NCBI GenBank assembly: GCA_037447605.1
Contig: CM074822.1
Span: 643,492-707,491, forward strand
Direction of reading: 5' to 3'
Length of the DNA: 64,000 bases
Source of the DNA: Zygnema circumcarinatum SAG 698-1b
Lineage: Eukaryota > Plantae > Zygnematophyceae
Shown: in pieces, positions 19,346 through 25,316 of the stretch
Numbering within the stretch: position 1 is the first letter of the stretch
Layout: the number at the start of each line of letters is the position of its first letter
The notes under the pieces: model-generated
The model's database searches: none
What the model saw: the letters and a program-made list of their open reading frames with translations, nothing else
Told to the model about the DNA's origin: nothing
Program-made: the position numbers and the translations under genes

Positions 19346-19850
19346 GGGGATTCCCTTAAACATATAAAGATACATATACAAACATTTTCAAGGGACATTG
19401 TGAGATTATTCTATGGGATTTTGAGAAACAGGAAACTTTCACACTTTGGCACTTTCATTTTGAGACAAATGAGGGTTAATGGCATTTATCTCACGCATGG
19501 CGAGGCCATCAAATGTACATATACATCAGCATCATACGGAACCACGAGGAACTGGTCGCAGAGGACCTAAGCACAAAAGGAGGGATTATAAGGGATATGT
19601 TGCAATGCAAACACCTCACCTTAGGTCCTCTGCGCCCAGTTAGTTCCTCGTGGTTCCCCATGATGCTGGTTTCGTCCATGTACATTTGATGGCCTCGCCA
19701 TTTTGAGATCGATGCCACTTTCATTTTACTTTCATGCATATGCCCATTTTACTCTAAAGCAAACCCAAATATCCGACAATCCTTTATTCGTCCCTTAAAA
19801 AATATATATGGGACGGCCAATAATCTATTTATGGGAGTTAAGGGATCCCC
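19346..19850. mobile_element. Putative TIR element containing a nested fold-back
   Basis: Ends GGGGATTCCCTTAA / TTAAGGGATCCCC, similar to the terminus at 693-708. Flanks TAA / TAC are not a clean TSD. Internal inverted repeat 19481-19571 vs 19620-19716. Confidence 0.5.
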
Positions 19851-20574
19851 TACACAGGTTCCCTTAATTTTCGAGGCCTGCGCTTACCGTTTGGTTGGTT
19901 TGTCGTACTGTATTTGACCGTACGGGACGGCAACCGCCCATTCCGGTAACCTTCATAACCGCTCCGCCGCCGGCCGCCAGTCGCTCTCCTCTCTCTCGCT
20001 CTCTCGCTCTCTCGCTCTCTCGCTGGCGGGCGGGCTCCCGTCCCTCCCTCTCCCTCTCTCCCTCTCTCCCTCTCTCCCTCTCTCTCCCTCTCTCATCCTC
20101 TCCCGACGCTCTCTCCCACCTCACTATCCCTCTCCCTGTCCTGTCTCCCACTTCCTCGATTTCAACTCGTTCTCCCCTGTCTTTCATTCTCTCGCACTCG
20201 CACCTCGCTATCCCTCTCCTGTGTCACTCTTTCTCGCATGCGAACCTCCCTTACCCTCTTCTGTCTCCCTCTCGCCCGCACTCCTACCTCTCTTATTTTC
20301 TACTGTCGCCCTCTTTCCTCGCACTCCCACCTGTCGCTCCCTCTCCTGTGTCTCCCTCCCTCTCCCGCGTCTCTCTGCCTTGAACTCCCACCTCGTCTCT
20401 GACTCAAGATCGTGTCCTACAACTATCTCTCACTCGAAACCTCTCCCTCTCCTCGTCTTATTTTCTTCTCTCTAGTCTGACCCCACTTCGCCCACTGGAG
20501 TGTAGCATGAGAAGTTCCTCAAGTTCCTCCTAACCACGCCTTCTCCTTCTTCCGTACATCCCCCTTCGGAATCA

Positions 20575-23500
20575 ATGGTTGCCGCCGCCTTGCCCTCCCT
20601 TCCCCTTCCCTCTCCCAAGCTCCTCCAAGAGGAGGCCCTCTCTCTCCCGCCCCCACTCACACCTCTCATCGCCTCTCTCCCTCCTCTATGCACCTCCGAC
20701 GAATCTCGATGGCGAGCCATAGAATTCGGAAACCCCAAAAGCCTCTCCTTCCAAGTCCTCCTCTTCGACCTCCTCCAGCATCAGCTCTGCTCTCCCTGGC
20801 AAGACATTCCCCTCCATGAAGGAAGCGGTTTCTTCAACTTCATCTGCACAGCTCCCCGAGAGAGCACTGAGCCTCTGGAGGCAGCCGAGGGAGAGTGCTT
20901 CCACCCTCTGCGTGTGAAGATCAGAAACGGGAAGCCATGGCGGTTCTCTCAACCCTCCCCATGGACCCTCGGCATGCTCCCCCAGACATGGGCTCATGCA
21001 GACCATCCATCTCAAGACTCCCCAGGAATCCCTTTCGATGGAAAACCCATCGAAGTAGTGGAGATTGGATCGAGGAAGGCGAGTTTGGGGGAAGTGTATC
21101 CCGTGAAGCCTTTGGCTTCTTTTGCAGTGATAGAGGATGCGGCGGTACTTTCTTGGAAGGTGGTGGCGATGGATGCGCGGGATGAGAGGGCGAGCAAGCT
21201 TGAAGATGTGGGCGACCTTCAGAGGGACATGCCGGGAGTGCTGGAAGGGGTCAGGGACTGGCTGAGGACCATGTACTGCTCGGGCCCAGGTGGGTCAGAC
21301 TACCCCTCTCTCTCTCCCTCTCAATCCCTCTCTCTGTCTCTCAATCTCTCACACTCTCTGTCTCTCTCTTTTTCTCCCTCTCTCTCTATCTCTAAATCTC
21401 TCACTCTCTCTTTCTCTCCCACTGTTGCTCTCTTTCTCTCTCTTTATCAATCTCTCCCTCTCTGTGTCTCTCTGCTTCTCTCTCTGTCTCTTTCTCTCCT
21501 TCTCTTTCTGTTTCTCTTTAAAGTTAGCTTTACTTCATTTGTTTTCTATTTGTTATCGTTTTATGAAGTCTTCGCTGCTACTCATGGGAATTGGAACCGT
21601 CCTTCAAAAAACTGTTAGCTACTGCGCCTGGGCTTTGGATGTGTCGGTTTCGCTTTCCCCTGAAAACGAAAAAAAAAAAAAAAGCTGTCCTCCTACATCT
21701 GTTTTCAAGATACAGATCCAAAGTGAAACCGTAACTGAGCCTATTTCTATGTTAAAATGTCCTGAAATCCGTGCAGGCGATCTACCGAACGCATTTGGGT
21801 TCAACGAAAGGCCGCTCGGGAAGCACGTGACTGTGCAAACTGTGGCCCACGTGCATGCCACGTGGCAGCTCCTGCATGAAGATCTGATCAAGGAACCTCC
21901 TGCAATTGCAACTCATTTTCCATTGCAGATGCAGCTCCTTGAACCGCCGGAGAATACGAGGCAGCTCTTGAAGACTTCTTCCAAATTGGAGGCCTCTTTT
22001 GCTTCTCTTGAACCCAAAATTTTTCTTAGAAACGTGTCTCCCAGTGATGGAGAGTCTTTGGATGGAGGGAGTGTGGACGGAGAGAGTGGTGAATTTTCAA
22101 GCTCGGTCTCCTCTACTCCTGATGCAAGCAGCAACTGTGGGGACTCCCTTACTGAAGAAACTCCCTTAAGTAAGAAGAAGGGAGGAGGGTTTCTGCGGTT
22201 CTTGAGGGAAAAAGTGAAGTTGCCGACGATACCTTCTCCAGAAGGAGGCCTATTTTTCCTGAAATCGAGTCCTCGCAGCTCGGAGATGGAGTACTTATCA
22301 TCGGAAAGTAGTGGGGGAGAGAGTGCAGGTTTGAGTCCCTCTCCCTCTCCCTCTCCCTCTCCCTCTCCGGGACAGCAAATAGTGAACAAGCCATTGTTGG
22401 GAACTATTGAGGAGGTGACATCTGGCAAGATACCGGAAGCATCGCAGGAGAAAGGGAGTGCAGAAGATGAAGATATTCCTCTGAGTTGGCCGCCCACGCC
22501 TGTAAGTGACAGAGAAATATGCGCCTCTCCTATGTTTGAAAAGGAACGGTTTGCGAAGGGAAGGGTCCGACCTACCTCGGTTGTCGAACAGCCTCTCAAG
22601 GTGGAAACTCAGTCTCCCGAAGTGGGCTCTCAGCTTCTGCAGGAAAGGGATGATGATGGTTTTGAGAGCAATAGATTTGATGTGAAAGGAAATGATGAGA
22701 CGTTGGTGCAAGATGGTGCCATTCAGTTGCAGCAAGTTGAAGAAGGTGGTAAGGCTGAGGAAGGATTAAGGCATAGAGAGCCGTCAGGTCATCAGAAGCT
22801 AAGAAAGAGTTGGTCTAGCAATGCGATTTATGTGGGGAAGACGGAGATTTCAGAAGCACTGTTGGAAGTGGGTGACGAGAGATGGAGGCGCGTTGTGGCA
22901 GAAGACAGTGTATGGAGAAATTCTCATCCTCCGCGAGATGTACGGGGGGAGAGGCCCATCAGCGAATTACCGTACAGAACCCCGAAGGCATTTCAGGGCC
23001 TTCCAGGGAAAGATTTCAGGAGAGAAGAAGTTTCAGAGCATAGACTTCCCCGCAGGAGTTCCACAGAATATGCAGCAGAGGAGGCAACACCCGGCCGGGG
23101 ACAGCCGTGGGAACTCAGACGCTCCTCTACCTATCACGTGCCATTGAAGGATGAAGATTCTATGTCTCCGAGTTTTGGAAAGTCAGCATATCAGGGAGGG
23201 AGGGAGTCTCCACAAACATTGAGAAGTTTTGAAGCTCGGCCGCATAACATGAGCCCTCGCGAAGGTTTCAGGAGCAGCATGATCTCAGACGACCTTGGAA
23301 AGGGAAGGAGCATGGAGAGGGTCCACATTCAAGTTCAATCAGAGAGCAAACCTCGTCAACTGGGAAGGCTCCCTCCGTGCAGTCCAAACTCCTTGGAGTA
23401 CAGAAACTTCAGCGACTTTCAGAGAGAGAGAAGAGAAGACATTTACCTCGGCTCCTCTATTGCATTGAGCAGAGCAAGGCTGGAGGAGAGGCGAGAGGTG

Positions 23501-23764
23501 AGAGAGTTAACTCGAAGCCGAAGTGCAAATGGGAGGGCGGAAGAGAGGAAGAGGACCCTGGTCAGTGCGCCGCGTGAGCTGATGCCTGCAGGAGAGAGAA
23601 CAGAAAAGACTCTCTGGGAAGAAGCCTTGCAGCAATACTCGCAGGAGAGAGAGAGAGAGAAAGTGAGAGAGAGGAGGGAGAGCGAGAGAGACAGAGACTG
23701 CAGGAGGGCTCCTAGATACCCTCAAACAGGGCTGCCAAGGAGGTGCCCGGAGCCAAAGAGATGA
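20575..23764 (+). CDS. Family-I soluble inorganic pyrophosphatase-like protein (plastid PPa6-like fold) with degenerate active site and long disordered C-terminus, ~900 aa
   Basis: Exons 20575-21289 and 21777-23764 (phase 1). SPWQDIPL, FNFI, GMLPQTW, VVEIG, VKPLA, WKVVA, VRDWLR and NAFGFNERP align with sPPase. Catalytic DNDPxD reads DGKPIE and DEGELDWK reads EDAAVLSWK. Confidence 0.88.
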
Positions 23765-23995
23765 CGTGGCGTGACGTGGACCAATCAAGACTTGTCACGT
23801 GGTGAACTGCTGACATGGACCAATATAATTGATTGGTGTAGACAGTTTGAAATAGGGCTGGAAAGGAGGAAGTGAAGTGAAGTGAATAAGGGGTCCTAAT
23901 AGGGGTGACAAGGAGGAGGCTCGAGCCATGAGGTGACGTGGCGTGACATGGACCAATCAAAACTTGACAGGTGGCTTCAGTGCTGACGTGGCACT
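23762..23995 (+). repeat. ~60-bp direct repeat rich in TGACGTGG and CCAAT, first copy overlapping the stop codon
   Basis: TGACGTGGCGTGACGTGGACCAATCAAGACTTG at 23762 vs TGACGTGGCGTGACATGGACCAATCAAAACTTG at 23935. Confidence 0.7.
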
Positions 23996-24725
23996 ATATA
24001 CTGTATTGGCCCAAAATTTACGGGACACTTGCCGATTGGCCGAGCCGGCTCGAGTTTAATTTGCTAACCCTTTCTATGTACTAGTTTGGCGTTTGACATA
24101 ACTTACGGAACTGCACGAAACTGTACGGTATGATGTACGGTGTCGACATATTGTACAGGCGGATCGATTCGACGCAGTTCCGATCGGATCCGTTTAACTG
24201 GTTTAGACATATAGCTAGTTCGTGGTGGAATGGGTCGTAGTAGGATCGATAGGAGGGAATGTTTGGGTTGAAGCTACACTCAAAATTTGAGTTTTTTTTC
24301 CCCAAGAGGCTTTGGGGTTGCTGTGAAGGTTGGGGCCATGAACGAGCATGTTTTTGGGAACTTGGGAGGAACGTAGCAACTAGACTTGGGAAGCATAAGG
24401 TGGTGTTGATGAAGCGACAAGGTTTGGGGTTGGGATGATGTGTTCATTACTTCTTTAAACACGGCAAGGACGCGGCAGACAACCAGTAGGGCATGAGAAC
24501 AATGTTCCTCATACATGGTCAAGCTGGACAAAGCTGGTTTTCACAAGTTGAGATACGGGCAATGTCGTGTTCAACACTTTCTTGCAATACAAGGATTCAC
24601 GAATTATGCCTTGAAGTGTGTTATTTTCTCAAGTATGTGCGCAATTTCTTCCTTATGCATGTGTATGCGCGCATGTCTGAATCGTCAGTCGTCCAAGGCC
24701 AATTCGCCACGTGTAGACAATTGCG

Positions 24726-25316
24726 CACGTCGGACCAACCATTGGATCAAGCATTGGAATGGTTTGCCGACCGTTTGGATTCAATGGTTGGCAAACATTG
24801 GGGCCAATGGTTGCAACTATTCAATGGCGGAAAAGTCAACCAATGGTTGGAACGGAGCACCCAACCACTGCTAATGGCTGAAGTCATTGAATTCAATGGG
24901 TGGTTGCTAATAGTCCGAGCCATTCGTTGGGACCTAGTCAGGATGAAATCGGTTTTTTTTTTCTTTCCCAAACATTATACGAAATAACTTTGTCATGAAG
25001 ACTGTCTATTTTAACATTTCAAAACATTGCCAATGATTGTCAACCATTTTAACGGTTCCAAACATTGGCGAAGGACCCAACCAACCATGGCCGATCATTG
25101 CCAATGGTTGGAACCATTGGATCTCAGTGGTTGCCAACCATTGCTACTGGTTGCCATCCATTGATGTCGGACCAAGCCAGCCATTGCTAATGGTTGCAAC
25201 CATTAATTGTCAATGGCTGCCAACCATTGTAATGGCTATAACCCATTGCCAACCATTGCCAACCATTGCAAACCAATGGTTGGCCAATGCTTAACGATCC
25301 AATGGTCCGACCCCTG
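24726..25316. mobile_element. CCAACCATTGG-family MITE copy or copies
   Basis: Right TIR ATCCAATGGTCCGACCCCTG ending at 25316. Degenerate left end CACGTCGGACC...CATTGGATC. Dense CCAACCATTG motifs. Confidence 0.65.

Follow-up and report, generated by a model that had tools for sequence, protein, structure and literature searches.

A probable pseudo-enzyme with a family I pyrophosphatase fold and a long disordered tail in the alga Zygnema circumcarinatum

Few housekeeping enzymes are as conserved as the family I inorganic pyrophosphatases (PPases; EC 3.6.1.1). In a full-text literature search, no account emerged of a family I PPase that is dead, of a radiating branch of such dead proteins or of the Mesotaenium genes discussed below. 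Here, we describe a nuclear gene of two exons from Zygnema circumcarinatum SAG 698-1b that encodes a 900-aa protein with a PPase-like head (residues ~46–284) and a long disordered tail. It is the one PPase-family copy in the analysed window, a stretch of 64,000 nt (assembly GCA_037447605.1, contig CM074822.1, positions 643,492 to 707,491 of the forward strand); all coordinates below are positions in this window, and all features lie on its forward strand. The head retains the fold of the enzyme, most of its catalytic residues are replaced, and it falls in a large clade of similarly altered proteins. We consider it probable that the gene is expressed and yields a pseudo-enzyme, in which the head would act as a non-catalytic interaction module and the tail as a binding platform under the control of phosphorylation.

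The coding sequence (CDS) starts at 20575 and stops at 23764, as the first-pass annotation had it, and the product has the length of about 900 aa given there. The reading frame is not the single uninterrupted one it described, however, but is assembled from two open reading frames (ORFs) in different frames, 20575–21618 (347 aa) and 21290–23764 (824 aa). The pyrophosphatase match lies in the former, which continues across a CT microsatellite (21306–21517) to its stop codon. Splice ends are present in the sequence as CCCAG|GTGGGT at 21289/21290 and GTGCAG|GC at 21776/21777, and removal of the resulting 487-nt GT–AG intron (21290–21776), most of which is the CT microsatellite found by Tandem Repeats Finder (TRF), fuses the two frames at a Gly codon split in phase 1. 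Exon 1 (20575–21289) encodes residues 1–238 and the first base of codon 239, so that the spliced product amounts to 238 + 1 + 661 = 900 aa. Four public runs (X1, X2, X4 and X6), drawn from three studies, have contigs with this joint (21286>21774; cut +3, GT..AG), among them a 1,813-nt contig of X1 (record 5) that spans it with flanks of 1,186 and 554 nt. Contigs cover the locus from ~20101 to 24600–24700, the intron joint is the sole joint within the gene, and the four runs show zero differing letters over it. From the spliced form, a minority with retained intron and contig sets of ~40 Mb, we infer that the four runs are RNA-seq. A contig that retains part of the intron (21527–21803, the 3′ part of the intron plus exon 2) was present in three runs at a depth roughly one-fourth that of the spliced contigs, and it represents either unspliced precursor or intron retention.

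The head has the β-barrel fold of a PPase, as the first-pass annotation had proposed for the fold in general. Exon 1 matches PF00719 with 51.5 bits (gathering cutoff 23.5, E = 1.3e-13), and its best solved relatives are human PPA1 (3e-25), the trypanosomatid acidocalcisomal PPase (~1e-24) and yeast PPase (~1e-19). An AlphaFold2 (AF2) model of residues 40–238, based on a 109-row alignment, has a mean predicted local distance difference test (pLDDT) score of 95.4, and Foldseek superimposes it on the human, yeast and Toxoplasma PPases (6c45, 1wgi, 5wrt) with template modelling (TM) scores of 0.85–0.88 and a root-mean-square deviation of ~1.5 Å over ~195 residues. The structural motifs SPW.DIPL, LPQTW, VVEIG and KPLA are all present, as had been listed. 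Residues 46–238 of exon 1 make up most of the fold, preceded by a Pro/Leu-rich leader of 45 residues (20575–20709). The model is confined to the exon 1 part; the last helix of the fold is encoded by the start of exon 2 (21777–21913, residues 239–284, NAFGFNER...AHVHATWQLL). The family hidden Markov model (HMM) picks up the first 45 residues of exon 2 at profile positions 206–256 (E = 1.7e-6), a helix is predicted at exon 2 residues 19–38 by single-sequence AF2, and the segment aligns with the 'FGLNER...AH..WQ' block of the family. An Atlas search with the head returned generic PPase clusters only.

The catalytic site has fared differently from the fold. Thirteen active-site residues were scored in yeast numbering taken from HMMER alignments (E48, K56, E58, R78, Y93, D115, D117, D120, D147, D152, K154, Y192 and K193), and two anchors agree on the numbering, with Zygnema residue 232 corresponding to yeast 191 and residue 195 to yeast 154. 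Ten of the 13 are changed (E48T, K56P, R78W, Y93L, D117K, D120E, D147E, D152S, Y192M and K193Y, with an Arg standing one residue beyond R78W) and three are kept (E58, D115 and K154), such that the protein lacks the active-site set of a family I PPase. It likewise lacks the D-x-D-P-x-D signature, which we take to be the PROSITE PPase pattern, and reads D-G-K-P-I-E instead. Every substitution that the first-pass annotation had picked out is indeed in the sequence. The roles of the 13 residues are those of the yeast enzyme; for Asp117, which activates the nucleophilic water, and for Asp115, Asp120, Asp152, Tyr93 and Lys56 as active-site residues they have been described (PMC11210485). Judged by alignment, the head has lost the general base Asp117, metal ligands (D152S, D120E and E48T) and phosphate-binding residues (K56P, R78W, Y93L, Y192M and K193Y), and hydrolysis of pyrophosphate (PPi) by it is therefore not expected. 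As far as residues can tell, the term 'enzyme-dead' used in the first-pass annotation is apt.

These losses are not peculiar to the Zygnema gene. Exon 1 had 1,454 matches in an exhaustive HMMER search, and among the best 150 representatives the Asp115/117/120/152 set is absent in 61 and kept in 78. A maximum-likelihood tree built from 130 heads places the Zygnema protein within a clade of 53 representatives, all of the dead type, with a Shimodaira–Hasegawa-like approximate likelihood ratio test (SH-aLRT) support of 100 and a long stem (0.70 changes per column). The clade groups, again with support of 100, with 14 active enzymes, including those of Mesotaenium, Spirogloea, Riccia and Camellia, which are soluble PPases (sPPases) of the plant plastid type. 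Asp117 and Asp152 are kept in 0/52 of the other clade members and Glu48 in 1/52, and K56 (10/52), R78 (3/52), Y192 (2/52) and K193 (2/52) are seldom retained. Other positions persist: K154 in 46/52, E58 in 41/52 and D115 in 30/51, with a Glu at site 120 in 40/52 and a Ser at site 152 in 31/52. Arg or Lys occupies the Asp117 position in 20/52, and Cys replaces Y192 in 28/52, often within a CHC motif. Members keep between one and six of the 13 residues (mode three) and vary widely at the old pocket positions, whereas in the active relatives each of the first 11 sites is kept in 72–73 of 73.

The fold residues (SPWH, PQTW, G.VY.VK.L, WK, DD and PG) are as conserved in the dead clade as in the active enzymes. 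At the 36 columns conserved to ≥80% in the clade, the Zygnema protein agrees in 86%, compared with a clade median of 89% (range 74–100%), which marks it as an ordinary member rather than a decaying one. With K, S, E and K at sites 117, 152, 120 and 154 it follows the clade pattern. The block that reads 'REWLR.CHC.PG ... FGLNER ... AH..WQ' in the family is DWLRTMYCSGPG ... FGFNER ... AHVHATWQ in the Zygnema protein, with MYC where the clade has CHC. Analysis of the conserved columns brought out no clade-specific new pocket residues. The nearest relative (P0002, 46% identical) lies on an ENA metagenome contig. The gene shares with L002, the nearest relative and the sole one for which genomic DNA was compared, an intron that interrupts the Gly codon behind the C.PG motif in phase 1; L002 continues after it with the same FGLN.R...AH..WQL segment, to which the exon 2 fold segment is 48% identical.

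The clade is a large family named so far only in Zygnematophyceae, to which the Zygnema gene adds one more ordinary member. All the members that we could name come from this class, namely five from Mesotaenium endlicherianum (P0009, P0011, P0016, P0064 and P0074), four from as many strains of Closterium (P0038, P0112, P0010 and P0157) and one from Netrium digitus (P0045), and for roughly half of the clade no look-up was made or no species name is on record. A word search with region 85–340 of P0023 gave four matches.

Several of the matched proteins carry more than one PPase domain. P0001 (NCBI, on a contig of 18,685 nt) is a 5,113-aa protein with 16 matched stretches and many degenerate PPase-like domains in tandem; its core sites were aligned in nine domains, and the catalytic set is complete in none. 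P0003, P0004, P0006, P0013, P0017 and P0027 have two to four tandem PPase domains each, and several tandem proteins hold the full Asp set in every domain, for example P0017 (four) and P0027 (three).

The tail (residues 285–900; 21914–23764 including the stop codon) comprises 616 aa with 13% Ser, 12% Glu, 11% Arg and 8.6% Pro, and ~70% of its residues promote disorder. The description in the first-pass annotation of a sequence rich in S, P, E and R with SP and RxxS sites is borne out by 20 S/T-P and 11 RxxS/T sites. The tail contains no hydrophobic segment and no Pfam domain, and a word search with exon 2 found no homologue of it. Atlas matches of the tail, such as Dendrin, were weak look-alikes that all stayed below 0.9 and were rejected, and BLAST with window scoring against 31 family tails gave compositional matches only, which were likewise discarded. 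The frame is nevertheless fully open, with zero internal stops compared with 16–33 in the other five frames and with a mean of 33 and a minimum of 15 in 2,000 shuffles of the tail sequence. Single-sequence AF2 of exon 2 gave a mean pLDDT of 44, with values under 50 for 525 of the 661 residues, and predicted helices in the tail at residues 784–834 and 848–882 only (23411–23707), both of them charged. The second is E/R-rich, reaches a pLDDT of 93, begins with LWEEALQQY and owes part of its coding sequence to a GA microsatellite (23645–23697); a WxEALxQY motif near the C-terminus is common to the Zygnema protein and P0007 only and can serve as a lead. A run of (SP)6 at residues 425–436 (22334–22369) is encoded by a TCCCTC microsatellite (TRF 22336–22368), and together with the GA-encoded helix it indicates that parts of the tail grew from simple repeats.

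The same architecture is common to the family, because PF00719 is the only Pfam family found in 16 long clade members of 834–2,052 aa. The other clade members share with the Zygnema protein the loss of Asp117 and Asp152, and many of them also have a long tail. The sequence of the tail is not shared, conservation being lacking in the comparison with L002. Short motifs are enriched nonetheless: the family tails contain 85 instances of R..S plus a following hydrophobic residue, compared with 38.4 ± 5.7 in shuffles, and the top enriched 5-mer in a reduced alphabet, [RK][RK][ST][LIVM][ST], is present in 10 of 32 tails compared with 1.0 expected, and in 6 of 32 compared with 0.2 expected when preceded by a hydrophobic residue. 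A hydrophobic residue at −5 and a basic one at −3 of the Ser are the pattern of SnRK1/CDPK/AMPK-type kinases, which the enriched motif fits. In the Zygnema tail, the variant L-x-R-R-S-S-T occurs twice; the two RRSST copies, each a candidate basophilic Ser/Thr site with a Leu in position −5, lie 22 residues apart at residues 664–668 (23051–23065) and 686–690 (23117–23131).

Taken together, the probable course of events is that a large and fast-diversifying clade arose beside the active plant-type enzyme, conserving the fold rather than the former pocket and, as a rule, carrying a long C-terminal tail. The head would then be a stable folded docking module without catalysis, and the tail a binding platform controlled by phosphorylation, with SP sites, basophilic sites of the RRSST type and a terminal charged helix as its putative elements. 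A broader version of this proposal, which we advance tentatively and regard as improbable in its full form, is that the whole clade consists of signalling scaffolds that radiated in a lineage-specific manner, with heads that read or dock and fast tails that grew from microsatellites and are switched by SnRK/CDPK-type kinases. Within such a radiation, the remnant formed by E58, D115, E120, S152 and K154 may perhaps still allow the head to bind one metal or a phosphate-type ligand.

Several observations weigh against the proposal of a purely structural head and a phospho-controlled tail. Most clade members retain E58, D115, the Glu at site 120 and K154, which could reflect a residual metal site and not structure alone. 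The tail has no sequence conservation even with respect to the tail of its nearest relative, and its function is read from composition and motif enrichment, with motifs that were partly chosen post hoc. The four runs carry no RNA record, such that expression rests on spliced contigs and on contig sets of transcriptome-like size. Finally, a homodimer prediction for the head scored 0.00 and gave no answer, which we list here even though it carries no weight either way.

The persistent residues are also the basis for an unlikely alternative, in which the head is a non-hydrolysing sensor of PPi, inorganic phosphate (Pi), a polyphosphate-type ligand or a single divalent metal and relays the signal through the tail. 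The five positions named above, each present in 30 or more clade members, amount to a partially conserved vestige of the M1 metal and P2 phosphate site. The phosphate-binding positions are, however, lost and variable in the clade (K56, R78, Y192 and K193), the Arg or Lys that replaces Asp117 in many members would fill the metal site, and no new clade-specific pocket residues emerged. The first-pass annotation had placed scaffold, PPi/phosphate sensor and hetero-oligomeric regulator side by side, and although our data do not tell these roles apart, the sensor is weakened by the loss and variability of those four positions. The regulator, a head that pairs with the active soluble PPase of the alga and regulates it, seems a little less likely again. 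By analogy it could draw on the general precedent of dead paralogues regulating active partners, and the whole fold is kept in a head that groups with the plant-type active enzyme. That enzyme is located in plastids, however, and is monomeric in green algae and plants, while many clade members begin their fold 1–20 residues from the Met and hence have no transit peptide. Moreover, at least 53 divergent representatives and several paralogues in each genome exceed what a single regulator requires.

A gain of new catalytic activity on a different substrate is to be doubted further. It would account for the frequent Cys at the Y192 position, often in a CHC motif, and for the persistence of some acidic residues, but the Zygnema protein has MYC and not CHC, and the pocket positions vary widely among members, unlike those of a conserved active site. 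Least credible, and in our judgement very improbable, is a decaying pseudogene or an artefact of assembly or annotation. The loss of catalytic residues and a tail that is partly built from microsatellites and has no homologues would agree with decay. On the other hand, spliced contigs come from three studies, 900 codons are free of stops when ~33 would be expected in the tail alone, the match to the clade-conserved columns is that of an ordinary member, and the intron position is common with L002. The claim of the first-pass annotation that the domain is kept under selection is supported by these results, in that the contigs (inferred to derive from RNA), the intact frame and the 53-representative clade that conserves the fold residues all favour it. 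Our preferred reading remains the interaction module with a phospho-controlled tail.

The transcript extends beyond the CDS on both sides. The contigs of all four runs start at 20101–20124 and continue unbroken into the CDS, which gives a transcribed 5′ leader at 20101–20574, the true start of which is hidden because the contigs stop at a CT repeat (19981–20100). Within the continuous transcript, the frame of the CDS closes just upstream of 20506, and the ATG at 20575 is thus the first in-frame start. The leader contains an upstream ORF of eight codons (MRSSSSSS, 20507–20533), read off the sequence, that lies 41 nt ahead of the main ATG. The 3′ untranslated region spans 23765 to approximately 24700, on the basis of contigs without joints that run from 23704 to 24594–24702 in all four runs. 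Dense CT-rich microsatellites and a 42-nt tandem repeat were found by TRF at 19981–20373, directly upstream of and within the 5′ leader. The flanks of the gene (19400–19800 and 24900–25300) attract many short, partially fitting contigs with depths from hundreds to ~2,400 and many loose ends, and these pile-ups are probably repeated or transposon-derived transcribed elements.

Zygnematophyceae are the sister lineage of land plants, and the clade would be a lineage-specific innovation of interest to accounts of streptophyte signalling and of the origin of pseudo-enzymes. At least five clade paralogues are present in Mesotaenium, with many per genome. There is also a practical consequence, given that automatic annotation as 'inorganic pyrophosphatase' merges dead with active proteins and would inflate gene counts for PPi metabolism; the clade member P0008 carries this label at its source (JGI/IMG).

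Among known systems, the closest is the plastid-type family I sPPase of plants and green algae (Arabidopsis PPa6/Chlamydomonas IPY1 type), which has the same fold and belongs to the same Pfam family. Its representatives here (P0015 from Mesotaenium, P0019 from Spirogloea, P0032 from Riccia and P0030 from Camellia) are the nearest active enzymes in the tree (support 100) and are 33–37% identical to the Zygnema head, with the SPWH, PQTW, VK.L, WK and PG motifs in both. However, these enzymes have 280–430 aa, no 616-aa tail and catalytic sites kept in 72–73 of 73, compared with 3 of 13 residues in the Zygnema protein. Yeast IPP1 and human PPA1 (1e6a, 1wgi and 6c45) are the best structural matches at 27–31% identity, and the metal and phosphate site that they possess has been dismantled throughout in the Zygnema protein. 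The Foldseek match list includes solved structures of yeast variants with single conservative changes (D117E, D120E, D152E, E48D, Y93F and R78K), each of which alone reportedly lowers activity. The trypanosomatid acidocalcisomal/vacuolar soluble PPase (5c5v and 5cuy; match ~1e-24) likewise combines the family I fold with an extra region, but it is active, and what it adds to the fold is an EF-hand domain, folded and N-terminal, whereas the addition in the Zygnema protein is a disordered C-terminal tail. Dead paralogues of metabolic enzymes are known elsewhere, as with the inactive APRT isoform of Trypanosoma brucei (PMC8836349). Like pseudo-enzymes in general, the Zygnema gene keeps the fold, has lost catalytic residues and appears to be retained and expressed; unlike them, the dead PPase has radiated into many long-tailed paralogues.

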